Source of the DNA: Klebsormidium nitens
Taxonomy: Eukaryota > Plantae > Klebsormidiophyceae
Assembly (NCBI GenBank): GCA_000708835.1
Contig: DF237001.1
Coordinates: 205,790 to 269,789, forward strand
Length of the DNA: 64,000 bases
Direction: 5' to 3'
Shown: piece by piece, positions 3,301 to 29,760 of the stretch
How the letters are laid out: the number at the start of each line of letters is the position of its first letter
How positions within the stretch are numbered: the stretch's first letter is position 1
Notes under the pieces: generated by a model
Told to the model about the DNA's origin: nothing
Databases searched by the model: none
What the model saw: the letters and a program-made list of their open reading frames with translations, nothing else
Program-made: the position numbers and the translations under genes

Positions 3301-5980
3301 GGTGTCACTCTTCGCACTCACAGACGAACAAGCTGAGGGACTCTGCATGGGGGTCGAATGTACGAGCGATCGCACAGAACAAATGGTGGGCCAGAATTGA
3401 AAAGCTTCTTAGAATGAATCTTAATACCTGATGCGGTCGGGCGTATCCAGAGTGGTGTGATACGCATACGAGTCCAGCAAGGACAGCACATCGACGCCGG
3501 GAATATTCCCAAAGTCCTGGGCAAACACGCGAAAGTCGGTGTCCCCTGGGAGGACATGCATGTCAAACGTGTCCTGCAAAACGAGAGAAATGGATTAAGG
3601 AGAGGACTCCGCACAAGGTGAGTCGAGCGTTTGAGGGCACCGTTGGCATCCGTCGCTCTTTTGAAAATTGGCTGAAATTCAAAGAACGTCTTGAAGAGCG
3701 TTCCGTTTCACAAGGGCGTCCAAAACCCAACTGTGATAGGCGAATTTTACACTGGTTCATTGGAAATGCATGCGAATCTAAAGAAAACTTAAGATCGCCC
3801 ACACGACTGTTCAGGAGCCTCCTCTGCAAGATGATAAACTCATCAGCCAACACCTTCTACGCTTAAGAACACAACCATGATCATGCATATTCTCGTGCGC
3901 CTCAACTCGTCATGTCACACATCATTGGGATCCTCAGCCGTATAGAGGTAAGGAGGCTGTCGAAGAAGTCGGGGCAGAAAGCATGATCTGCAAACACAGT
4001 GCCAGAAGTGACCACCAGAGTCTTGTAGTAAAACTTTGTTTCACCTGCGCGATCACGCTTGCCCTAGGGTACGGCACCACCTCCGAGTACACCCGCACTG
4101 GCCACAGCTCCTTTCCCGCTGCTTGGAACAACAAGTCGGGACCGCCCGGCCCGGTCGACTCGATGTTTATCACCGCCCCGATCGAGTCGCTCCACTTGTG
4201 ACCGGAGAGGAAACCGTGTGCGCCCATGCTGAAGGTCTCCTCCGCACCATTGAACAGGAAGATGAGCGGGGCAGGGGGGGCCTCGGGGGAGGCGGCGAAC
4301 AAGCGAGCGATCTCGAGGCCGACGGCTGCGGGAAAAGTCTGACATTGGGTTAGTGGCAAAGTCGAGTCATTTAAGATAAGGAGAAACGAAACGGACGGCT
4401 GCCGCTTTTCAAGAACAAGGGAGGTTTTGGTGGCAAAGTGTGGTCATTGAGGGAAAGGGAGAACAGAATGACGATTGCCGCTTTTCGACCGAAGAAAGGC
4501 TTGTACATCAATCTTGTGTCAACATTAGCGGACTGAGGACATCTCTCTCGGACAACACAGAATGAACATGCAATTTTGGACGGACAAGACCTTGTCCAAG
4601 ATCGACCGACTCACCAACGCACTGCGCGCAATCTGAGGCGCCTGGCGACCCCACGGCAGAGTCAAAGTGAGCGTTCATAAGAACGGCCTTGCTTTCCAGG
4701 TTGCTGTTCGCCCCCGAGATCCTGCACAGTGCCCCATCGTCACAGTTTTCACCAGCAGTTACTTGTAACCAGGGGGGGAGCTAGGGATCACACATGGGCT
4801 GCCGATGCAAGTTGCAATAGCCTTGACGCCACTTTGGTTGCTCATTAGAGAGTATCCATGGGCTGGTCCCTTGCAGACTTGACCTCCTTTCTCTCAATCT
4901 GGCAGATTAATTGCACTGCTTGTGTGGGCTTACCTCAGCACGATATTGGTGACGTTTTCGTACTCCATTGCCTGCAAGTGACCCACTTTGGCAAGTCACA
5001 CAATAGAAGTTTGCCAGTAATGATGGTCTATGACCCAGTCCGCTAGGTCAAAACAGGGGCAAGAAACGGGGGCAAGAAACGCTTGGTCAGACTTGGCAGA
5101 AAAAAATGCCTTTAAAAGGTCAGTTCAAAGCGCAACACAGGTTGTGTGGTTGTTGTGGGGCACATACCATGTTGTGCGTCAGGATGTTCATCCAGAATGT
5201 CCCACTTATATGCTGCTCATCAATCTCAACGCGCAAGTGATCTCCCGCTATGCTTGCAATTTTGTCCAACTCTTCCAGAATATACGCTGCCGCTCGCATG
5301 TGATTGTCCGATCCCACCTGTATGGAGTAACAAAGTTGGTAAGATACAAATATTTTACTTATAGCATTTTACTGTAGAATTCCCACGTTGGTTCGATTGG
5401 CATGTCAATTGAGGTTCATTGACTATCCAAGTTGGCTTGAGCAAACACATCGATGTGAAACACAGGGAACAAAAAGGAAAGCGGGTTGAACAATCCACGG
5501 CTCCTTGCCTAAGGGAAGGCAGTGGTGGTGCTCAATTTGGCAGGGCAAGTTGGACCCCCGATAATTTCCCCCTTCTTTATTCATTTGTAACAGCATTACA
5601 ATTTGATCTAGAATGGCGAGATCATCTTCAAGATTCCAGCCTCCAATCACCACGCACGTCCACCACTGCAGTTGTCTCACCAGTCGAATGCCGATATCCC
5701 CTGCCAGTGCCTCCACATGTTGCAGCGCGCGTCCCTCAGAAAACATATGAGCTGGCGCCCTTTCCGACATCGGCTTTGGAACTCTGTACACCGCATGATG
5801 CACCACCCCCACAATCGCTGATGTGAACATCAGGAGAAGCAGCACGGCGGATAGCTGTGACGCAGCCTCCGGTGCATCTTTGTTGCGGACCCGTGCCTGC
5901 TTCAAAACATCTGAGGGGGCCTCGCTTTTCTCCTGTTCCTGAGGCTCCTTGGTGCCAGTCGGGCGCTGCCTGAGCGCCAT
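324..5980 (-). CDS. M28 family ER metallopeptidase (ERMP1/FXNA-like), multi-exon; 3' end continues past the left window edge
   Basis: ATG at 5980 (MALRQRPTG..FSEGRALQHVEALAGDIGIR). Spliced exons carry the M28 zinc-ligand motifs in order: MNAHFDS..GASDC (~4760-4615), LFNGAEE..INIESTG (~4340-4050), DTDFRVF..YHTTLD (~3560-3430). These are followed by transmembrane exons (~2790-2635, ~2270-2050, ~1130-920) and FPYTTTELKRLAVQHT (540-324, donor G|GTAAGC). Internal exon boundaries are approximate. Confidence 0.92.
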
Positions 5981-6610
5981 TGCTGCCCCTGTTTACATCC
6001 GATATCACAGCAGGGAAGTGCATGCCGGCTGCAGCCATGCTCCAAGCTACTTGTTTGGGCCTAGGGTTGGAAAACCCTAATAGTAAGAGGGGCAAGTCAG
6101 CATCAACCATTCAGGTGTAAAACTGACCCGTTCTCCGGTCGGTCATGACTCTAAAAGACCGGGTGAACTGAACCGGCTTTCTTTTGGCTGCGCAAGTCCT
6201 GTGGGGTTAGCCTACAGAGTATTGTACGACGTAGATCTGAACCTCGGTTGGACCGCAGAGTGACCGGTACGCAGCTGGCCTTCTCCCGGCTGGCAATTAC
6301 CACCATATTTTTATGGAACAAGCTTTGGCTCTGCAAAATCACAGCTCTGAGTCGTGACTCTGACTCTGAGTCTGACAGGTCTGCATTCGAAGCGGGCCCT
6401 GGCATGAACAGGACGAATGCACTCAGTGCAAGCAAAGAAACCCTTCTGAGCTGGTTGGGAAGCTTGCACGATGCGCCCGATGGACGTGATGGCGTCTGAT
6501 TGACTGCAGATTGAGCAGATTAGAGAATTAGGGTTGAAGGAGTGTCATGCTGCTTTTGCATACTCGCTATTTTCCCTCCAGTTTTTGTCCAAATAAGCAG
6601 CAGACGAATC
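5981..6610. promoter_or_regulatory. Probable bidirectional promoter/5'UTR interval between the peptidase and the SET gene, with telo-box motifs
   Basis: 630 bp between divergent ATGs (5980 and 6611). AAACCCTAA at 6072-6080, CTAGGGTT at 6061-6068 and TTAGGGTT near 6528. Confidence 0.6.
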
Positions 6611-9600
6611 ATGGAACAGCAGCAGCCCAGAGGAGCTGCATTTCCGTTCACAGTGATTGATGCAGACAGTGGGGCAAGCACAGGAGCTGAAGCAGCTCCC
6701 AGATTTGATGAGAGGCAAGCAGCTATGGCAAGTCTGCAAAGTGGGATTCCGGAGGTGGTGGTTGCAGCAGCAAGTGATCTTCAATCTAGAACTGAGAGCG
6801 AAGGCAGTGTCGTTCACCTGTCTGGAACTGGGACGGGTGGAGCTGCCAACGTGGTCGCAGCCAAGGATAGGGCGGCCGCGCTGAAGGAGAAGGCAGAGGT
6901 GCTGAAAGCAAAGGCGCGCAAGCTGAAGGAAGACGCAGAGGAGAAGCAGAGAGCAGCTGAAAGAGCGCGGCTTGCGATTCTGAGAAAGGCGCGGGAGAAG
7001 GAAGAAAAGGAGGAGAGGGAAAGAGAGCGAGCGAGGGAGCGGGAAAGGGAATTGGACCAGGAGAGAGAACAGGAGATGGAGAGGGAGAAAGAGATGCAGA
7101 AAGAGAGGGAGAGGGAGAGGGAACTTGAAAGCGCAAGAGAGAAAGAGCAGGAGGCAGAGGAGGAAAAAGAACGGGAAAGAGAACGGGAAAGGGAGCAGGA
7201 AAGAGAGGTGGATAGAGAGTGGGAGAGAGGAGCTGAGAACGGGGTGGACACTGTAATGCAGGATGCCAAAGCAGAGCAATCAGGCTCCTTGGTGGATCAC
7301 GAGCACGGCAGCTCAGCAGACGCAGCTCCCTTGGATGGCGCAGTGGAGGCGCTGGTGGTTGCCAGCATGTCTCTTGGCACGCCGCGCATTCCGCTGCTGC
7401 GGAGGGGCAGCCTTGGGAGCGGGGAGTTCAGCAGGTTCAGGAAATCAGAATCCTTTCCAGAGATTGCGAATGGGGATCACGAGATGATGGATGCTGCGGT
7501 CAGCTTGTCTCCACTGGGGCGGATGGGGAGGCTCAAGGTGCAGATTCCTGACCGGCTTCTAGAGCTGCAGATGGAAGACCTTCCGGAATTCCCAGGTGGA
7601 TTTGGCGAGAAAGCATCCCCTGCAGAGGACGCGGCAGCTGCGGCCATGCTTGAGATCAGCATGACACCAACCTCGGAGCTGCACGCAGGATTCAGAGACA
7701 CTCCAGCTCAAGGTGTCAACGTGGGGAGCGGTGGGGCTTCAACAGCAGAGGTAACAGAAGGCCGGACGAAGAGGAAGCGGAAGCGCAACCGCATGTACTT
7801 TGATGACGACGTGGCGGTGGGTTGGCATGATTTGGACACGCCAAGGGTGGCGTCGGAGGGCGAGAAGAAGAGCGACAGCCTCCCAAAGCCGAAGAAGAAG
7901 CTCAAGATCACGTTCAAGGGTCCGGCAGCTCTAGCTCAGAAGGACCCGCACTCAGGCAAGAACATTAGAAAGCTGAAGAGCCTCAAGCTGATCAAAGCGA
8001 AGGCAAGCAAAGCGGCCGCCGCGCCCCCGAAAGTCAAGACACCGGTTGCGAGAACGCCGCTTCCGAAATCTCCCCTGGAGCTCAAGTCGCCAGAGAGCCC
8101 GGAGGACGCGCAGTGCCCCGTATGCCAGGCGCTCCGCCGGTTCGACTGCGGCGCTGAGTCAGCACACCCGCGCTGCATCAAGGCAGCCGGCGCAGACAAC
8201 GCCGCCGTTCAGGGGGGGCCCAACGCCAAGGCTGCGGCAGTTGTCCTCATGGCCGCTTTGAATTCGAGGAAAGACGCCTCCTTTGAGCCCTGGGCCGGAA
8301 CTGGGGAGGAGCAACTAGAACGGGTGCCGGTTTGGGAGCCGGTCACTGGAAAACGGTTGGTCGGTGAGGACGGCCCCCGCTTGCGGAACCTGGCAAGCTG
8401 GCTGCTCCTCAATCCTGGCTGGGAGGTCCTTCCCCGGGGAGAGTTGGAGAAACCACCACCCCCGGCAGAACCAGAGCCCATCCCGACCCCTGCCCCCCCT
8501 GCTGAGATAGCAGTGGTTCCTACCCCCCTGGAGGAGTTGAAACAGTGGCGGGGGGTTCAGGCAGAGCTCGCGTTGCTCCTCCAAGCATGGTCGTCGTTGC
8601 GGGGACGGGCAGACGCGGGCTGCTTCGGGAGTTCGCAGGAGGCAGTGGCGGCATGCCGATTCCTGGACCCTGTGAGTCTTGCGCCTGTTCAGTCTTCTGC
8701 CTTTGACAGGTCGTTGGATCGGTCAAAATGGCAGAACACTGCCTGCTTTTGCAGCGGTTAAACAGATGATGCTTCTGTGCAATTTATGAAGGACTTGTCG
8801 TCTTTCACGGATGCCTTCTGCTTCAGCTTATTCAGCGGTGTTACTCGAAATTCGTTAAGCAGGTTAGAACAGATGCAGACTCACACTCTTCGCCCTTCCG
8901 CTGTGATTCGCAATACTGAGGCTACAGGACTAGATCGGCGTGGAGGACGGAGCCCACAAACCCCGCTGAGCTTCGCATCTTGATCTCGGGTTAAGATTCA
9001 CACAGACTGATTGATTGTCCACTCGGTTGTAGGACTTTGGCCCGCTCTGCGACCTCTTAGGCGAGGAGCGGTACGCCGACTTGGAGACCCTCCTGGCGGA
9101 CTTCTCCCGAGCTTGCAACGCAGCAGCCGTGGTCCGCATCAACGACCTGAAAAAGTGAGCCCGCACAGTGCGACTGTCCCTGCGCGTTCTTGGTTCCTGG
9201 CGCACTTATGGCAGATTCACCTCTAAAATGTTCGAGCTGGAAACAGCTACAAACACGTTCTTGACAGAAGAAAGGTTCCCAGGGCTTTTCTCTCGCATTC
9301 CCACAATCGACGCTCATAGAAGCCGTCGGCTTTAGTAGCTGCCTGCTATCGACGTTAGCAGCCCGTCTCCAGCTCGAAATGTGACGGGGGCCGCCGCCCC
9401 TGTTAGCCCCTCTGTGCTGAGTAAGGCTTTGCTGTGCTTTCATTATCAGCACGGTGCACCAGCGGCCTTTCCTAATGGCGCTCTGCTTCGTCCTCTCCTC
9501 CATTCTCGCTTTTCAGATCACACTTTCCTCCTCTCCGCCAAGGGCGTTTAGTCGAGGGCTGGAACGTCTAAGCTGCTCTCTTGTGTTTTGCAGGGGCTGC

Positions 9601-21700: not shown

Positions 21701-24246
21701 TTCCGTCCCTTTCCGATACAGGCATTTTTAACACCACGACTATAGTGGGGATGCTCCATTTCCGCCGGACGCGCATCCGTTTCACGGTAGTGTGCACTGT
21801 GCACTCAGCACTGTGCACGGCGACGTTTGATCCAGCATTTGTGGCCACTTGGTACCAGGAAGCATGCTTGCCCGTGCTCACTGCACTGAAGAAAGTGGAG
21901 AAGCGAGGCCTGCCTTTCGTGTCGCCTCTTCTGAGCCCCTCGGGGTTCCGCTCGCTTGTCTGATGGTGACCGGAACATCTTGCACATCACTGGCCAATTC
22001 GATAATACGATATCCGCCAGAACTATTGTTCCGGTCCGAGGAGTCCGCTGCTCGCATTAATTTGTCGTTGTCAGGGCGACCAAGGTTCCGATTTACATCT
22101 CTGGTTTGTCGGAAAGTGCGTAGCAATCCGGCACGGAAATGCCGAAGTCGTGACAACCGTCGTCCCAGCTCCTCATGCAACTTGCGAGTCATGGCGGCAG
22201 TCATGAATGCGGCACTCATGAAACCTTCGTGAGGAGTCAAGCGCATCGTTTGTTGCGGCAACCTCCTCTGCACCCTGCATGCCTCCTGGCCTTCTCTCCG
22301 TCAATATGCCCATGCCACACGGCGCGCCGCCAACCGTGCTGAGTGGGGCAAAAGGTGGGGGGGGGAAGCAAGTGGCCTAAACTTCAAGTTGGCGGGTAGA
22401 CTCCAACACTTTGACGAGGAAGGAGCTTTGAGCTGTGACCAGTGCGTAGCTGAGCTGTGCAGACAGGATCCTGCAAGTAGCTGGGCCTAGGACTAAGAGA
22501 GCTAGCTGGTGTGAGCTTTGTCTAGGGTGATGCAGGGTTGGGGCGTTTTTGAGCGAAGCCCAAAGCTGTCGGCTAACAGTCAGCTATGAAAGAGAAGACA
22601 GCCGGCATTACGTTTTAGGGAGAGGATTTTGCACGACCGAAGCTAGAGGGTTCAACTGCACCCTCATCAACGCCTGTTTTGGCCTTCACGGGGTGGCCAC
22701 AGGTGGAATGCAAGTGGAACAGGTAATGATGACATGCTTCCCCGCGTCACCCCTTCATTTGACCATTGTGGGCTTCGTTGACCATTCCGCCATGATTTCA
22801 AAATCAGTGTCAAAGTTGGGAGCTTCTCTGTTGTAGGGCCGATTTCTTGTTGAACTCTGAGAAACGCCTTCCAATCTGGAGCTATGCGTTGCATGTGGCT
22901 GTCTTACAAGCAGTTCAGAACTGGAGGTACGGCAAATGCAGGGTTTTAGTCAGGATGGTAAAATGCTGTCCAAATGCTGTCTTGTGGCGGGCTCCTATAG
23001 CACTCTTGGAACGGGTAAAGTACGGAGGAACTTCTGTAGCACTTGTCAGGTGGGCAAAGCAGCAGGAAAGTCACGCTTCTTTGCACAGTTGGGCTGCTTG
23101 GGCCCACAATCCCCTAGCATGTGGCAGCAAAAAGCCCCTTGTGCTTTTCCTTCGCGCTTTGGGTGGACACGGGCTTCGTGGATTCTGGATGCCATGTGCA
23201 TTGATGTCAGTGGCAGTCAAGCTCTGGACAGTGTAATCTCTGTCTACATTTGCTGTGACCTTGACTTTGACTTGGTTTCAGCACCATTTGGTCCATTTGC
23301 TTTTGTGGCGGTTACGTGTTTCGGAGCCTTCGCTGGCCAAACCCGTCCCTTGCTCGTTTCTGAATATTACCAACACAGAGTCGAACAACTTTTACCTGGC
23401 CGGGCTGCTTACTAATAATTATGGAGCCTCTCACTCTTGTTCCGGGGTTGAAGCCTAACACTTGGTCAGCTGCTGGTCACAGGAAGCATCTGCTTCTCGG
23501 ATTCAGCTGTTGAAGGAACCCGAGTGCCAGTCAACTCAATTGAGGGGATAATGCCAGAGAATAATTGGTAGTAATGGCAGGATCACAGGTGGTCATTTCA
23601 CAATCTGGTGGGATTCTACACAATTCGCGAGTTCGGCCGCGATGTGACAAGCAAATACCCCCTGCCCTCTCCTGCCCCATTATTCTGGTGAAAGGTGCTA
23701 GTAAAAGGGCCACGATTTGACAAAAAGGGGAGACACCTCATTTTGCATGAGCTTTGCCGTTTAATTCGAGTCCCCTTGCTTAAGTGATGCAGCCAATCAT
23801 CAGCCAATTTTGACCCCCATGCTTACCCAGCACAGGTGCCCTACAGGCTGGGTGGCCTGTTCAAAAGAGTTGCTGCATCGTCGCTTGTTGCCCACCTTTG
23901 CCCATCAGCATTCACAAAATCTCGGTTTAAGGAATCACCCTCCATTGACAGTCCCAAGATAGGAGGCAACCAGATCTGGTGCGTGCCTCATGCTGTGCAC
24001 GTTGCCTTGGCCCCACTGACCCGCCCTCATTGTCGCATGCAGGCTTACTAAACGCCCTGAGAACAGCTGTCTCTGAGAATACCACCAGCAGCCTCCATCT
24101 TCAGCACAGCATTGACTGGGGGCTGTCCGCTGAGCAAAAAAAGAGGGTACTTTAGAGTAGGCCCCAGCTTGCATCTCAGTGACAATTGGCCGGGCTGGCC
24201 CGAATGCTCCCCCGCCGGTGCCCCCCCCCATGGTGCGGGCAGTAAG

Positions 24247-27226
24247 ATGCTGGCGCTGGAGGCTGTGAGCGACACGTTAGCTAGGCTCCATCCCGTGAGC
24301 ATCCCCCCCAGTCCGCTGGACCCGAATGGTTGCCTCCAGAAGCTGCAGCGGATCGATACCCCGCGGGGGGTGCTAGAGGGTGCGGTGCGCCAGCAGAGCT
24401 CCGTCACAGAGCACACGTTGGAGGGGGGGGGAGAGGTGAATGAGGGCGCGTCGGCGCAGAGCCCACTGGTGATGGAGAAAGGGGGAAATGGGCAGCAGGG
24501 GGAGGGCGTGGGCCAGGAAAACCGCCCCCCCCCCGGACAGGAGATGACGCCCGAGCAGATTGAGACCCTGCGCCGACAGGTGGCGGTGTATTGCGGGATA
24601 TGCGACAACTTGATGGCCTTGCACCGTGCGAAAATGAGCGGGACCCAAGGTGAGGCTGCATGATATGTTACCAATTTTGAAGTCGACACGAGCTGGGTTG
24701 ATGAATTGACAGTCCTGTTTGAACAACCAAGTTGCAAGCTGTACCAAAGTGCAAGATCATTGTGCACATCTGCAACCTGGCCTTGCTTGCAGGTGCCAAG
24801 TCCCCTTCAGCATCTTTGTTGCAGGACTCAACATTTCACACTTGCCCCCCATTCGTTGGCATTTCTCTATCTGCAGAAAAAGTTCAACCTCCTTAGAGCT
24901 AGTGGTGTTCTTTGCAGCATCGCCATAGGCTTGTTATGTCCTCCTAGTGCCCTCTTTTGGTGAAGAGCCCTCTCACGGATTTTCAGTCTACACTTCCCTT
25001 CCTGCCCTGCTCAGCAAACTGTGTCTAACCCACATATCCAATTCGGCAGGGCCCCTACAAGGGATGGATGCCTACTACCAGGACGCATCCGCGATGATCA
25101 ACCGGGGGGGAAAGCACCGGTGGGCCCCCGCAGAGGCGCAGAAAGCGGCGCTGGACCGAGTGTTTCAGGAGCTGGGGGGGGGCACCCCGAGCAAGGCGCG
25201 CATCAAGGAACTAGTAACGGAGCTGGGTCGGCACGGGCCAGTGACGGAGTCTAACGTGTACAACTGGTTCCAGAACAAGAAGGCGCGCAGCAAGCGCAAG
25301 GTGGCGGCCACCGAGGCGGAGAGCGGGATCGACGACCGGAACCCCAAGCGGACGCGAGAGGACGGGGCGCACTCGAGCGGCAGCCTCAACATCACGTCGT
25401 CCTTCGATGTTGACCGCATGAGCGAGGGGGGGGTTGTGTCGTCTGGGTTTGAGCAGCGCCCCGCGCCTGCGCAGCAGCTTCAGGTGGGGGGCTTGCGTCT
25501 GCTGCTTTGCCCTTTTCTCTTCCCCTCTTTCTTCGTTGTCCCTTTTCCCTGTCCTTTTCTTGCCCCACTTCCATTTCGTCTGCTGCAGCTGCTGGTAAGT
25601 GAGATCTGACCCAAAGACGATCTCTATGTTGTCCTTCCGTATCCAAGCCTGATGAACCACGCTTTTTCCCCAGATCTGCTCTGCGACGTCTTTGTTCTTC
25701 TTTGTCAAAGGAGTCCTTTACTGCAGAGCAATAAGGCTGGCTCCTGGGGGTAAATGAGCCCCTGCCAAAGGCCAATTGACATGTTCCGTTACCTATTGAG
25801 ATGTTCTTTGACCACGTCATTCTAAGTTTGCCTCTAAAAAGAATGCGCGGTGTGCTTCTCTTTGGATCACGTCTAATCGTTTAGATGGAAGTTCTGTGGG
25901 CACCCCAGATCCAAGCTTTTTATTCGAGTCTGAGCCAACTTCTCAAGTTGTGTTGCTTGGTCACATCAAGGGCTTTTCTGCAACTCCACTGTATGCCTGT
26001 TCACACCAACTCCTCCAACCAACTCCTCAGAAGTTACATTCTTGATTTCAAATCGTCATATAGTTCTGCTTTTACAGTTGACATTTGGCCGCCCGCCTTA
26101 CGGCCTTTCTTCCCCCTCGTGCAGACCCCATTGGGCTGGCGCAGCGGTGCCCTTGCTCACGACATCCCTGCCCCCCGCACGCAGCTCTTTGCCGACTCCA
26201 GCATCCAAGACGCGGCAGCCATGCTCCTTTACGCCGCAGCGGAGAACGCTGGCCAGGGGGGGGGTAGTGCAGCGCAAAGCCTGGCCAACACGCTGGGCCT
26301 GCTGGGGGCTGCGCAGGATGGGGCGTCCTTCTTCCAGGGGGGTCAGGGCGGCAGCAACATGGGGGGGGGGCTGGACCTGCCTTATGGCGCACTCACAGGG
26401 GAGAGCGCGTACAGCCAGCCGCAGGGTGAGGGGAGCAAAACATGGAAGCCCACGGGTGTCGATGCTCGGTGCCTAAGTGCGGCGAAAGCTGCACTGTACA
26501 GCCCAAGATTTAACAAGTTGCGCACTCTGATTTGAGGATCGATTCTAGCTTTGACTTGCTGACTTGATCTATCACCTTAGCTCGGATGGTGCAGCTTGCG
26601 GAACTTCTGAACGAGACACCCTCTTTCCGTGCTTCCACGAATAAGGGAGTGCTACTACAGTCACTTTCTATCAGAATCAAAGAGAGTTGAGAGTTGTTCA
26701 CCTCCGCCTGCAGCAAAGCCGTCGTTCAAGGCTGCCACGAGATTGTTTTAGAAAACGTTTTGCCCACTTTGATCAAAATGTCTGACCAACTGTTCTGGAG
26801 CGTCAAACTTTAGCCATTGGCCGTTGCAGCCAAGCCGACAGGGATAATCGGCCTGCCTCCAAGAGCAGTAGGAGTGCTTTTTCCCGGATCTAATCTTTTG
26901 TTGACGTTTGACCTGCAGCAGAGACGTCGTTGAAGGTGATGATCAACGGGCGGCCGTACGACGTCCCTGCGGGCCCGCTGGACGTGCGCGCCAGCTTCGG
27001 GGAGGGCATGGTGCTGTACGACTCGCGCGGGGTGCAGGTGCTCACGGACAACCTGGGGGTCACCTTCGACGCGCTGCACAACGGGGAGTCGTACTACCTG
27101 CAGAGGTCAGCCGCTTTTTCACTGGTGCCGTGCTCGGATACGCTGTGCTGGCAAGCATGCGCGCATCTCCATTGTGTAGCTTCAATCGCCGCGAAAGTTG
27201 CATACGTGTTCGTGGGGTCTTTTTGA
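24247..27226 (+). CDS. WOX: WUSCHEL-related homeobox (WOX13/T1-type homeodomain) with a WOX9/11-type C-terminal domain
   Basis: Exons ~24247-24649, 25050-25483, 26125-26425, 26922-~27104/27226, with consistent splice phases. Contains MTPEQIETLRRQVAVYCGICDNLMALH (WOX13 N-terminal motif), homeodomain HRWAP..GTPSKARIKELVTELGRHGPVTESNVYNWFQNKKARSKRK (25112-25300), and VMINGRPYDV..LHNGESYYL. Start codon and last boundary are uncertain. Confidence 0.93.
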
Positions 27227-28299
27227 AGGGTACGGTCGGTCTGAGTTTCTTCTATATTTAGTTGGTCGTTGCTATTCCTGCGACCGCGTTTGTGGTCTGG
27301 TTAGGCAGGTGGCGCTTCCGCCAGATGTCTCTTTCCAAATGATGTAACTGCATGACTTCTCTGCTTGCAATGGTCTCAGATCATTCGTCTTCCTTCTGTG
27401 AGCAATCTTCGGGGGACGCACCTGATACTCAAAAGACGAGCTATCGTGATGTTGCATCAGACCGTGACGGATTGTTCTGCGCTCGTTCCGCTGACCCGAC
27501 GCTGGCCTGTGTGCGTGCAGCGAGCTCCAACCCGGGTTGGGCCTGGATCACGACCGGCTGGGCAGAGCGGTAAGGAACATCGCGCTCGCTCCCGGTCTCC
27601 CCTCTACGATTTGGCCCGTTACCCGCTTGCACCTTCGCACGGAGCTTGCTAGTCTGTGACTCAGGGGCTTCGGTCCAGCGCAAGTGGTTTTTGGCCTTCG
27701 CTTCGTGCGGTCGCCTGCTCAACCTAGGGTGCACCCACGGGCAGTCGCAGGTCACGTCTTTAAAGATGAGGCTCCTCAGTTGGGGGCCCCATCGTACGGT
27801 TGACGGCTTAGCACAAGAAGTTCCTTCGACCGTGATAAAGGTTTCATTCGCAATTTCTGCCTGCGGCGTGACTCGTTCATTCTGTGCCTGATCGACTCTC
27901 TGTGCTGCGTGCAGCTGTTCCCGTAGCTGCGCTCCACGTCCATCGCTGACACCGCTAACCCCACAGAGCCGAGCTAACCCCCGCGCCAGGCGGGCAGTCC
28001 TGCGCGTGTACAAGCTGTTGCAGATGGTAGGCCGCAGAACGGGGCGCCTGACCCCGCTAGACCCGCACCAGATAGGCCAAGCTTTCCCTTCGAGCATCAG
28101 ACGCAGTCAAAGGGGCAGCCTGTTGTAATATCATGCTACTCGGCTGAGAGTTGTGCCACTATTTTGGGCGTTCTTCCGCATGCTTGCTCGGCCGACACCG
28201 TGACGACTCCGAAACAATAAAGTGGGCGCAACTCCCGCCCGTATGTCCGACTGGCAAACAAGTGTATTAAGTAGGACGTCAGCGAAAACGGCTTGATGG

Positions 28300-29760
28300 G
28301 AGGACTGCCGGCGCCAATAATCGTTGGAAGCTGCAGCTAGTTCGACATTCATAGACAGTTCATAGATTAAACTTGATTGAGTAGCTAGGTCGACTTCGTC
28401 CTCTTTTTGCCTAGCTTAAGTTATGGTCCTTCTGCAACATTGACCATCTTGGTGGATTGCCAGATGAGTTGTCTTGCCTTGAAACCACTTCGAGCAGTTC
28501 CGTAATTCAATATGGTGCATTCCGACCCATGCTGCCCCGGCGTAAGTTTGCGACCAGTATGACGATTTTTATAGCTAGAGGACACCTGAAGCTTATCAAG
28601 GGGCAAGCTAGCTTGCATCGCTATGCAGCGTCGAATCAGCTCGATCAGCTGGGCGACGGCTCATACATAAGATCATGTCGGCGCGGCCTATTGAACCGAG
28701 GCTGGCCGGGCTTCCTCCCAAGTTCACAAATTCAACGTACGATCATAAGCCCGGCTATACAATTAAGACTAAGAATTGCAGACCGTACCATACGTTCGCA
28801 CCGCCGCGCATGCTCAATCATATGTATGGGCCATTATTGCGGCCGCGCGGCGCTGATCGACTTATAGCTTATGAGCTGGCATGACCATAGGTATGCGTGC
28901 GCGTGACCGGCTCGGCGAGCTATCAGACTGCATGAATGCTAGCCTGGTATATATGTCCCCGCGGCCAAAGCTAGTGCATCATATGCATAGCTCGGCCGCG
29001 CCCCGGCTAGCTAGCTGCGGCCGCGACGCGCCTGCATGAGTCCACTGCCGCGCGCGGCCCAGAAGCCTGAGCTGAACATGCATATCGCGGGGCGGCAGCG
29101 AGTTAGGGCACTAGCTATAGATATGCAATTCACTTACTCCGACAGTTACGTTGCCGGCCGGGCCAACCCTGGTCACTGCGCATGGCGGCATGGTCACTCT
29201 GGCATGCCGCGCAATTAAATGCAACTAGGTTACTTGCACGCCATCGGACTTGCCCGCCCGCAAATGAAAACCTAGAAAAGAGATCCTATGATTTGCAAGA
29301 CATGCGCATGGAATACGCATCAGTTCTATATAATCTCAGATATACGAGTATTGGTATCCAGCCTTGTCACATTTACCGTGTGTGGGCACTGCGAGCTAGG
29401 CTCGAAGTCTGTGTACGTGTAATGATGTGCTAGCTTAGCCGCCGCTAACGGCCTTTGCTAAGTCTATCTCTTGACTAGTGAAGGTCGAGAGGTTCTGTAT
29501 ATAAAAATTGCATGATGATGCACGCGCTGATGCTTGGCCACGTACCAAAACACGTTGTGTCGCCATCCATCAGACTGTGTGCATTGCCAGATCCAAGGGC
29601 TAGCAGATCAATGTTCTCGCCTATGTTGTGCTGGCAGACAGACCGTACGGGACGTACGAACCTGCCACCTCCGTCTAAAACCTAGCGGAGTTTAGACCGC
29701 TCACCTTGCATCAAGAAGTCTGCAAAGACCGCGTGCGACTATATGTATAACGTGCAACAA
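28300..29760. other. Intergenic palindrome-rich island between convergent WOX and G-patch genes
   Basis: Dense GCTAGC, ATGCAT, CATATG, GCGGCCGC (twice), GCTAGCTAGC, GATC and CATG; no credible ORF. Confidence 0.65.

Follow-up and report, generated by a model that had tools for sequence, protein, structure and literature searches.

A WOX13-type WOX protein from the alga Klebsormidium nitens that very probably also carries the C-terminal domain of WOX8/9/11/12

The stretch of Klebsormidium nitens DNA analysed here (contig DF237001.1 of assembly GCA_000708835.1, positions 205,790 to 269,789; 64,000 nucleotides (nt), hereafter the window) contains a WOX gene with six coding exons. Its 461-residue product is very probably a T1 (WOX13-type) WOX protein that also carries the CTDW, a C-terminal domain known from seed-plant WOX8, WOX9, WOX11 and WOX12. 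WOX genes hold a central place in the regulation of plant stem cells, of embryo patterning and of root initiation, and arguments on how these functions arose draw on the three-clade history of the family. In the Klebsormidium gene, a single spliced mRNA encodes the N-terminal T1WOX motif, the homeodomain and the CTDW. A preliminary description made from the sequence had picked out all three. They were located as it claimed, and none is a chance match: the motif aligns without gaps to T1WOX proteins, the homeodomain reaches a Pfam E-value of 9.7e-11 and the C-terminal block has 148 protein matches. The exons and modules of the gene are as follows, in positions of the window, with the evidence in brackets.

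22600-22722, plus strand: 3′ part of a non-coding exon of the 5′ untranslated region (UTR) (joint 22722/24043 in four sequencing runs; splice sites read)
24043-24649, plus strand: first coding exon, coding probably from 24247 to 24649 (contig joints; Met and N-terminal region aligned in the orthologous loci L001-L003)
24544-24630, plus strand: T1WOX motif, also called WOX13 MOG or NTDW, MTPEQIETLRRQVAVYCGICDNLMALHRA (gap-free alignment with T1WOX proteins)
25050-25483, plus strand: exon 2, homeodomain-bearing (joints 24649/25050 and 25483/26125 in four runs)
25112-25297, plus strand: WOX homeodomain of T1 type (Pfam PF00046, E 9.7e-11)
26125-26425, plus strand: exon 3, Gly/Ala/Gln-rich linker (contigs 26122-26325 and 26345-26424; frame open and 66-90% conserved in the orthologues)
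26919-27105, plus strand: exon 4, C-terminal domain (joints 26425/26919 in run X7 and 27105/27521 in four runs)
26936-27100, plus strand: CTDW or T2WOX motif (VFIN and LQxG WOX8 MOG motifs), VMINGRPYDV...NGESYYL (phmmer, alignment A1, T2-only profile)
27521-27569, plus strand: exon 5, coding, completing a Ser and then encoding ELQPGLGLDHDRLGRA (joints in four runs; 75-100% conserved in the orthologues)
27915-27926, plus strand: start of exon 6, LFP and TAG (LFP-stop kept in L002 with TGA and in L003 with TAG)

The MTPEQIETLRRQVAVYCGICDNLMALHRA motif aligns without gaps to 18 T1WOX proteins, including the WOX13 proteins of Ricinus and Carica, MpHD6, CrWOX13A and SkWOX13B, and local phmmer comparisons gave E-values of 1e-7 to 1e-10. 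Conservation in this alignment is at least 90% in the columns M, T, Q, E, L, R, Q, I, Y, I, C, Q, L and H; the Klebsormidium motif departs from three of them, with V in place of I, N in place of Q and M in place of L, and it has the variants MTPEQ and Ala in LxAxH in common with the Zygnematophyceae. Helix 3 of the homeodomain reads NVYNWFQNK (25253-25279; NVYNWFQN 25253-25276), with KKARSKRK after NVYNWFQN. The diagnostic YN is therefore present, with a final K instead of R. The best solved relatives of the homeodomain are STENOFOLIA (4e-9) and WUSCHEL (1e-5), and the named relatives from sequence searches are WOX proteins. A word-index search with the homeodomain exon returned two orthologous fragments and two Acorus proteins only, the length limits of that search excluding full-length relatives. 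In an IQ-TREE phylogeny of 47 homeodomains, built without T3 sequences, the T2 proteins formed a clade with an ultrafast bootstrap value of 100, and the Klebsormidium homeodomain fell outside it, among the T1 sequences. Judged by its motif and homeodomain, the protein is a T1WOX and not a T2WOX, because helix 3 has NVYNWFQNK rather than NVFYWFQNR and the homeodomain lies outside the T2 clade.

The C-terminal block (VMING...ESYYL) is 55 residues long. The 61 residues of exon 4, compared by phmmer with 1.84 billion representative proteins, gave the 148 matches at E ≤ 1e-3, nearly all spanning residues 3-60 and lying C-terminally in full-length proteins of 200-450 residues. Most of the matches of at least 150 residues carry NVFYWFQNR. 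Among the named ones are a Taxus NIFYWFQNR protein (E 7e-11, 57% identity) and a Cicer WOX9-like protein (5e-9), as well as Silene WOX9-like, Cryptomeria WOX8-like and Pinus WOX proteins. An alignment of 37 such sequences (A1) is almost gap-free, with G27, G46, L52 and Y58 invariant. By these comparisons the block, whose resemblance to WOX8/9/11/12 the preliminary description had noticed, is homologous to the domain that Wu et al. 2019 named the T2WOX motif, that Deveaux et al. 2008 described as the VFIN and LQxG WOX8 MOG motifs and that Wan et al. 2023 (PMC9810776) called the CTDW. No Pfam family matched exon 4 or any of the 37 CTDW segments, a search of the PDB by sequence with the CTDW profile returned nothing meaningful, and a word-index search with the exon found two orthologous fragments of open reading frames only. 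Five long, repetitive non-WOX proteins among the matches (P0081, P0084, P0087, P0099 and P0143) were set aside as chance: their scores are summed from partial matches, and two of them have typically bacterial domains.

Transcript evidence comes from the assembled contigs of four public runs, each from a different study, placed on 22600-28400; contig strand is uninformative in these data. Joints with GT..AG ends were found in contigs of all four runs at 22722/24043, 24649/25050, 25483/26125, 27105/27521 and 27569/27915. We treat the gene as expressed because such intron-skipping contigs with canonical ends are cDNA-like. The joint that links the CTDW to the upstream exons, 26425/26919, is present in a 317-nt contig of run X7, which consists of 80 nt of exon 3, followed by the complete exon 4, by exon 5 and by the beginning of exon 6. 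The VMING exon is thus spliced into the WOX mRNA, as had been proposed. It is not the last exon, since 27521-27569 and 27915-27926 follow, and its acceptor is seen at 26919 instead of 26922. This acceptor is a NAGNAG site at which the choice of 26919, read from the one contig, adds one Ala. Likewise, the gene had been described as starting at 24544. The exon that begins at 24043 has in-frame stops before 24112 and its first in-frame ATG at 24247, which is most likely the translation start, as the Met aligns with a conserved in-frame Met in three orthologous loci.

The resulting coding region, searched exon by exon with the exons kept unjoined, comprises six exons, 1383 nt and 461 codons and is followed by the TAG at 27924-27926. 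Exon 4 is preceded by a phase-1 and followed by a phase-2 intron, and after the C-terminal domain the protein ends in S-ELQPGLGLDHDRLGRA-LFP-stop. Exon 3 has no Pfam match and no stop codon in frame. The GC content is 0.60-0.70 in exons and near 0.47 in introns. The 5′ UTR includes at least one further exon and a 1320-nt intron, contigs extend about 450 nt upstream of 22600 in the 5′ UTR exon, and the 3′ UTR reaches at least to 28400. Two short upstream open reading frames of 13 and 12 codons, at 24204 and 24230, lie ahead of the ATG at 24247.

Two word-index matches led to three orthologous loci: L003, from a Logan assembly and about 98% identical, and L001 and L002, from JGI metagenomes and about 85-90% identical. 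Exon order, frames and splice sites are kept in all three. Amino-acid identities measured by tblastn in L003 and in L001/L002, respectively, are 89% and 63% for exon 1, 98% and 85% for exon 2, 90% and 66% for exon 3, and 98% and 90% for exon 4. Synonymous and non-synonymous codon differences in exon 4 stand at 14:6 against L002 and 7:1 against L003, and the introns flanking the exon gave no blastn match to the orthologous loci. Exon 4 is, on this comparative evidence, under purifying selection. Its identities (98%/90%, vs 98%/85% for exon 2) show that it is under a constraint no weaker than that on the homeodomain exon.

The same architecture was then traced in other plants through the phmmer matches and a word-index search seeded with the Mesotaenium protein, combined with local scans using the CTDW profile and the T1 motif. 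Proteins with the T1 motif, NVYNWFQNR and a CTDW occur in the streptophyte algae Mesotaenium endlicherianum and Closterium sp., in the liverworts Calypogeia fissa, Riccia fluitans and Riccia sorocarpa, and in the lycophytes Selaginella moellendorffii, S. kraussiana (SkWOX13B) and Diphasiastrum (three genes). They are also found in the fern Ceratopteris (CrWOX13A) and in the gymnosperms Ginkgo (two genes), Taxus and Cryptomeria. A 214-residue, probably truncated protein of Adiantum nelumboides has a T1-type homeodomain and a CTDW; the T1 motif was not detected in it. The profile scans found no CTDW in Physcomitrium, Ceratodon, Spirogloea or the WOX13 proteins of Ricinus and Carica, and none at useful significance in Sphagnum, where the A1 profile picks up a trace of 12.8 bits in S. 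balticum and the T2-only profile picks up nothing. In the T2WOX proteins scanned, no T1 motif was found.

Bryophyte CTDWs look as if they were in different stages of decay. The Calypogeia domain is intact at 85 bits, those of the two Riccia species are weakened (50-54 bits), Marchantia MpHD6 retains only a remnant of 12-19 bits, with 19 bits at best, and Sphagnum balticum the 12.8-bit trace (this series consists of proteins P0179, P0167, P0170, P0166 and P0208); Physcomitrium and Ceratodon have lost the domain from view altogether. Automatic names are misleading in this family: many angiosperm WOX13-type proteins are labelled 'WOX8-like', Acorus P0003 and P0004 are called 'WOX8', and Cryptomeria japonica P0187, named 'WUSCHEL-related homeobox 12 isoform X1', is T1-type by its T1 motif, NVYNWFQNR and CTDW.

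To compare gene structures, annotated proteins were mapped to their own loci. Each of the six genes examined encodes the CTDW in a single exon, preceded by an intron of phase 1 that lies 4-13 codons ahead of the domain:

Klebsormidium (window), T1: 5′ phase 1, 6 codons before the first strand; 3′ phase 2, one codon after YxL
Closterium, T1: 5′ phase 1, 10 codons before the first strand; 3′ phase 2, one codon after YxL
Diphasiastrum, T1: 5′ phase 1, 9 codons before the first strand; 3′ phase 2, one codon after YxL
Calypogeia, T1: 5′ phase 1, 9 codons before the first strand; 3′ phase 2, one codon further downstream
Nepenthes, T2 (probably WOX11/12-like): 5′ phase 1, 4 codons before the first strand; 3′ phase 0, directly after YYL
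Cicer WOX9-like, T2: 5′ phase 1, 13 codons before the first strand; 3′ phase 0, directly after YYL

The gene structure around the CTDW, as read from these loci, argues for one origin of the module. The Closterium model (P0007; locus L004, CANIUD010000194.1) is unusual in its length of 934 residues, with about 590 between homeodomain and CTDW. By tblastn only residues 1-178, 842-909 and 925-934 reach at least 95% identity to the locus, and the middle may be low-complexity, split into many small exons, or part of an over-extended model.

The combination of modules is itself already known. Wan et al. 2023 (PMC9810776) described 'chimeric' proteins with NTDW, AC-HD and CTDW in SkWOX13b of Selaginella kraussiana and CrWOX13a of Ceratopteris richardii, assigned only NTDW and AC-HD to chlorophytes, Spirogloea, Physcomitrella and Marchantia, and placed the origin of the CTDW in the vascular-plant ancestor. 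In the study of Wu et al. 2019, a C-terminal motif of about 60 residues is specific to the T2 superclade, which by their account consists of seed-plant proteins only. The view of the domain as a pure T2 hallmark, taken up in the preliminary description, was therefore already outdated, SkWOX13b and CrWOX13a having been reported with it. In the literature searched, which mostly did not cover subscription journals, we found no statement of a CTDW in algae or liverworts nor of an algal streptophyte origin. The check for prior description thus leaves the algal and liverwort cases as new and the combination as published: what is new is its presence in Klebsormidium, two Zygnematophyceae and liverworts.

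CrWOX13A and SkWOX13B resemble the Klebsormidium protein in having the same three modules in the same order, with a gap-free N-terminal motif, NVYNWFQN and a domain found by the same CTDW profile. Unlike them, the Klebsormidium protein comes from an alga, outside the vascular plants. Its residue after WFQN is K and not R, its homeodomain loop is longer by one residue, its linker is long and rich in Gly, and a tail of 20 residues with LFP at the end closes the protein. The Mesotaenium (ME000025S04424) and Closterium (CAI5465992.1) proteins, database entries for which no published description was found, are likewise algal and have the T1 motif, NVYNWFQNR in helix 3 and the CTDW, whose exon in Closterium has the same intron phases. 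However, their CTDWs are only 47-53% identical to that of Klebsormidium, they form their own group in both trees, and Closterium has a very long stretch between homeodomain and CTDW.

Comparing the Klebsormidium protein with seed-plant T2WOX proteins (WOX8, WOX9, WOX11 and WOX12) reveals a homologous CTDW, 43-57% identical over its full length and encoded in one exon after a phase-1 intron. Otherwise these proteins differ: they have NVFYWFQNR, lack the T1 motif and end right after YYL, where they have a phase-0 intron. Conversely, angiosperm WOX13/10/14, MpHD6 and PpWOX13L share the T1 motif and the T1-type homeodomain, whereas angiosperm WOX13 (Ricinus, Carica), Physcomitrium and Ceratodon have no CTDW match and MpHD6 only the 12-19 bit remnant.

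We infer that the three-module architecture goes back at least to the common ancestor of Klebsormidium, Zygnematophyceae and land plants, because the taxonomic spread fits and the gene structure agrees. In this respect the proposal of the preliminary description, an ancestral streptophyte WOX with both modules that were later partitioned, gains support. The tree built from 144 CTDW segments unites the T1-linked copies in a single group, separate from two large T2 groups and ordered with Klebsormidium first, then Zygnematophyceae, then gymnosperms, ferns and lycophytes. The separation of T1-linked from T2-linked CTDWs is, in this weakly resolved tree, what vertical descent predicts. T2WOX would then have kept the CTDW, lost the N-terminal motif and changed helix 3, and the CTDW would have been lost in angiosperm WOX13, mosses and some algae.

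As for function, the homeodomain presumably binds DNA. For the CTDW, AlphaFold2 with the A1 alignment predicted a structure with a predicted local distance difference test (pLDDT) score of 95.4 and a predicted template modelling (pTM) score of 0.77, in the order strand, strand, short helix, strand and final strand. The Foldseek top 50 were nearly all ubiquitin-like or other beta-grasp structures (ubiquitin, NEDD8, ISG15, UBX and ThiS), with E-values of only 0.027-0.18. An exhaustive VIA-align search returned almost only ubiquitin-like (Ubl) domains at Z 5.0-5.8, with a root mean square deviation of about 2 Å over 52-58 of 61 residues. In topology and size the predicted CTDW is reminiscent of ubiquitin, NEDD8, UBX, the BAG6 UBL and ThiS. 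It differs from ubiquitin in having about 57 instead of 76 residues, no C-terminal Gly-Gly and no detectable sequence relationship, so that the resemblance is one of fold only. A feature search of the ESM Atlas scored at most 0.85, and its weak ThiS and SAMP2 rows served as a lead to the beta-grasp idea only. The model suggests that the CTDW is probably a beta-grasp fold, which does not make it a member of a Ubl family.

QLQ (PF08880) is a domain of GRF and BRM proteins that binds SNH co-activators. The Klebsormidium T1WOX motif matches its profile positions 2-17 of 35 with 17.3 bits and E 0.0038, short of the gathering threshold of 23.8 bits, and 19 of 20 T1WOX motifs match it below threshold (best E 5.9e-4). 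The T1WOX N-terminal motif may accordingly resemble a QLQ-like docking helix, a resemblance that does not extend to QLQ membership. In the likely mechanism, the CTDW would form a small, compact beta-grasp module of ubiquitin-like type and the N-terminal QLQ-like helix a second module, both of them protein-docking surfaces for co-regulators and not DNA-binding elements. It is quite possible, if not quite probable, that the CTDW was an ancient ubiquitin-like docking module that stood beside the QLQ-like helix in the founding streptophyte WOX, and that T2WOX derives from such a T1-type gene instead of being an equally old sister lineage.

Several observations weigh against these interpretations. 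The Klebsormidium homeodomain sits on a long branch, and the homeodomain and CTDW trees rest on about 64 and 56 residues, respectively, and are weakly resolved. The 85.8 bits that a hidden Markov model of 48 CTDWs from proteins with T2-type homeodomains (the T2-only profile) gives to the Klebsormidium exon are inflated, the members having been chosen by similarity to the query. On the structural side, the CTDW matches at Z 5-5.8 and Foldseek E-values of at least 0.027 fall short of a distinctive match, for which a VIA Z of about 8 is the level, and neither Pfam nor PDB searches gave a sequence link to any Ubl family. The 3′ intron phase is 2 in T1-type but 0 in T2-type genes. As for the transcript, the 26425/26919 joint was seen in one contig of one run only, the contigs over exon 3 do not overlap and leave a gap at 26326-26344, just 5′ of a G10 run, and the RNA status of the runs is a tool guess for data that are assembled contigs only. 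The single contig with the 26425/26919 joint, and the breaking off of most contigs inside exon 3, would suit a gene-model artefact, in which the VMING exon belongs to another transcript or to read-through and the WOX protein ends earlier. We consider this hardly credible: the X7 contig links exons 3, 4, 5 and 6 in frame, exon 3 has no stop, the three orthologous loci agree in the order and frames of the exons and in their splice sites, and the modules follow each other in the same order in annotated proteins of Mesotaenium and eleven other genera.

Exon shuffling or gene conversion might also have carried the CTDW from one WOX lineage to another, in which case the domain would not be ancestral and several gains would replace the many losses. 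Such mobility would suit a discrete single exon, a 3′ intron phase that is unlike between T1-type and T2-type genes, and the patchy occurrence of the domain, which is missing from Spirogloea, Physcomitrium, Ceratodon and angiosperm WOX13 and leaves only a trace in Sphagnum. Yet T1-linked CTDWs from algae to gymnosperms cluster together apart from T2-linked ones, the CTDW intron phase and position are alike in alga, liverwort and lycophyte, and the degenerate 19-bit remnant in MpHD6 and the weakened copy in Riccia resemble decay in place, so that transfer appears unlikely. An older origin is an improbable alternative as well. Here the CTDW would have been part of the first green-plant WOX, lost from chlorophyte WOX and T3WOX and retained in the alga. 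Wu et al. 2019 placed the split between T1 and T2+T3 before the Viridiplantae ancestor; if that is right, a CTDW common to T1 and T2 predates the split. However, no chlorophyte appears among the nameable proteins of the 148 phmmer matches (most short matches are unnamed), only NTDW and AC-HD are reported for Ostreococcus (Wan et al. 2023, PMC9810776), and the data need no extra losses if T2 arose within T1 genes that bear a CTDW.

If the three-module architecture is ancestral, the origin of the CTDW moves back to streptophyte algae, before land plants, and the history in mosses, Marchantia, Spirogloea and angiosperm WOX13 becomes mainly one of loss and not of gain. An expressed and constrained algal CTDW contradicts both the seed-plant specificity stated by Wu et al. 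2019 and the dating of Wan et al. 2023. The advance lies in re-dating and extending a known architecture from public sequences and not in a new kind of system. Should T2WOX indeed descend from a T1-type gene, two published views would need revision, namely that the T2 motif is specific to seed plants (Wu et al. 2019) and that the CTDW originated in vascular plants (Wan et al. 2023), and Klebsormidium would offer an algal system for finding CTDW partners. The CTDW has neither a Pfam model nor a solved structure, and its predicted fold points to a testable biochemical role as a small beta-grasp docking module.

Further features of the locus were noted. Homopolymer runs of G7-G10 or C7-C10 occur in the coding exons at 24303, 24423, 24525, 25104, 25174, 25426, 26256 and 26361. 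Contigs of several runs stop just before the G10 run at 26361; where contigs span the runs, no length differences were seen. Intronic contigs at 23455-23810, 26460-26863, 27130-27477 and 27540-27943 have a depth of 2-14, compared with 50-200 in exons, and are probably unspliced pre-mRNA or trace DNA. The tail behind the CTDW, E(L/I)QPGLGLD..RLGR(A/S) followed by LFP-stop, is kept in the three related loci (L002 about 5572-5887; L003 about 6596-6878). Its terminal LFP resembles the core of the WUS box (TLxLFP), without the upstream T-L, and a search for a C-terminal tail motif beyond the CTDW common to the different lineages found none. About 2-3 kb downstream of the WOX gene, a minus-strand G-patch gene is found in L001 (9244-10515), L002 (7737-8318) and L003 (8226-9495), which suggests conserved synteny; an R3H open reading frame adjoining it was called in L001 and L003 only.

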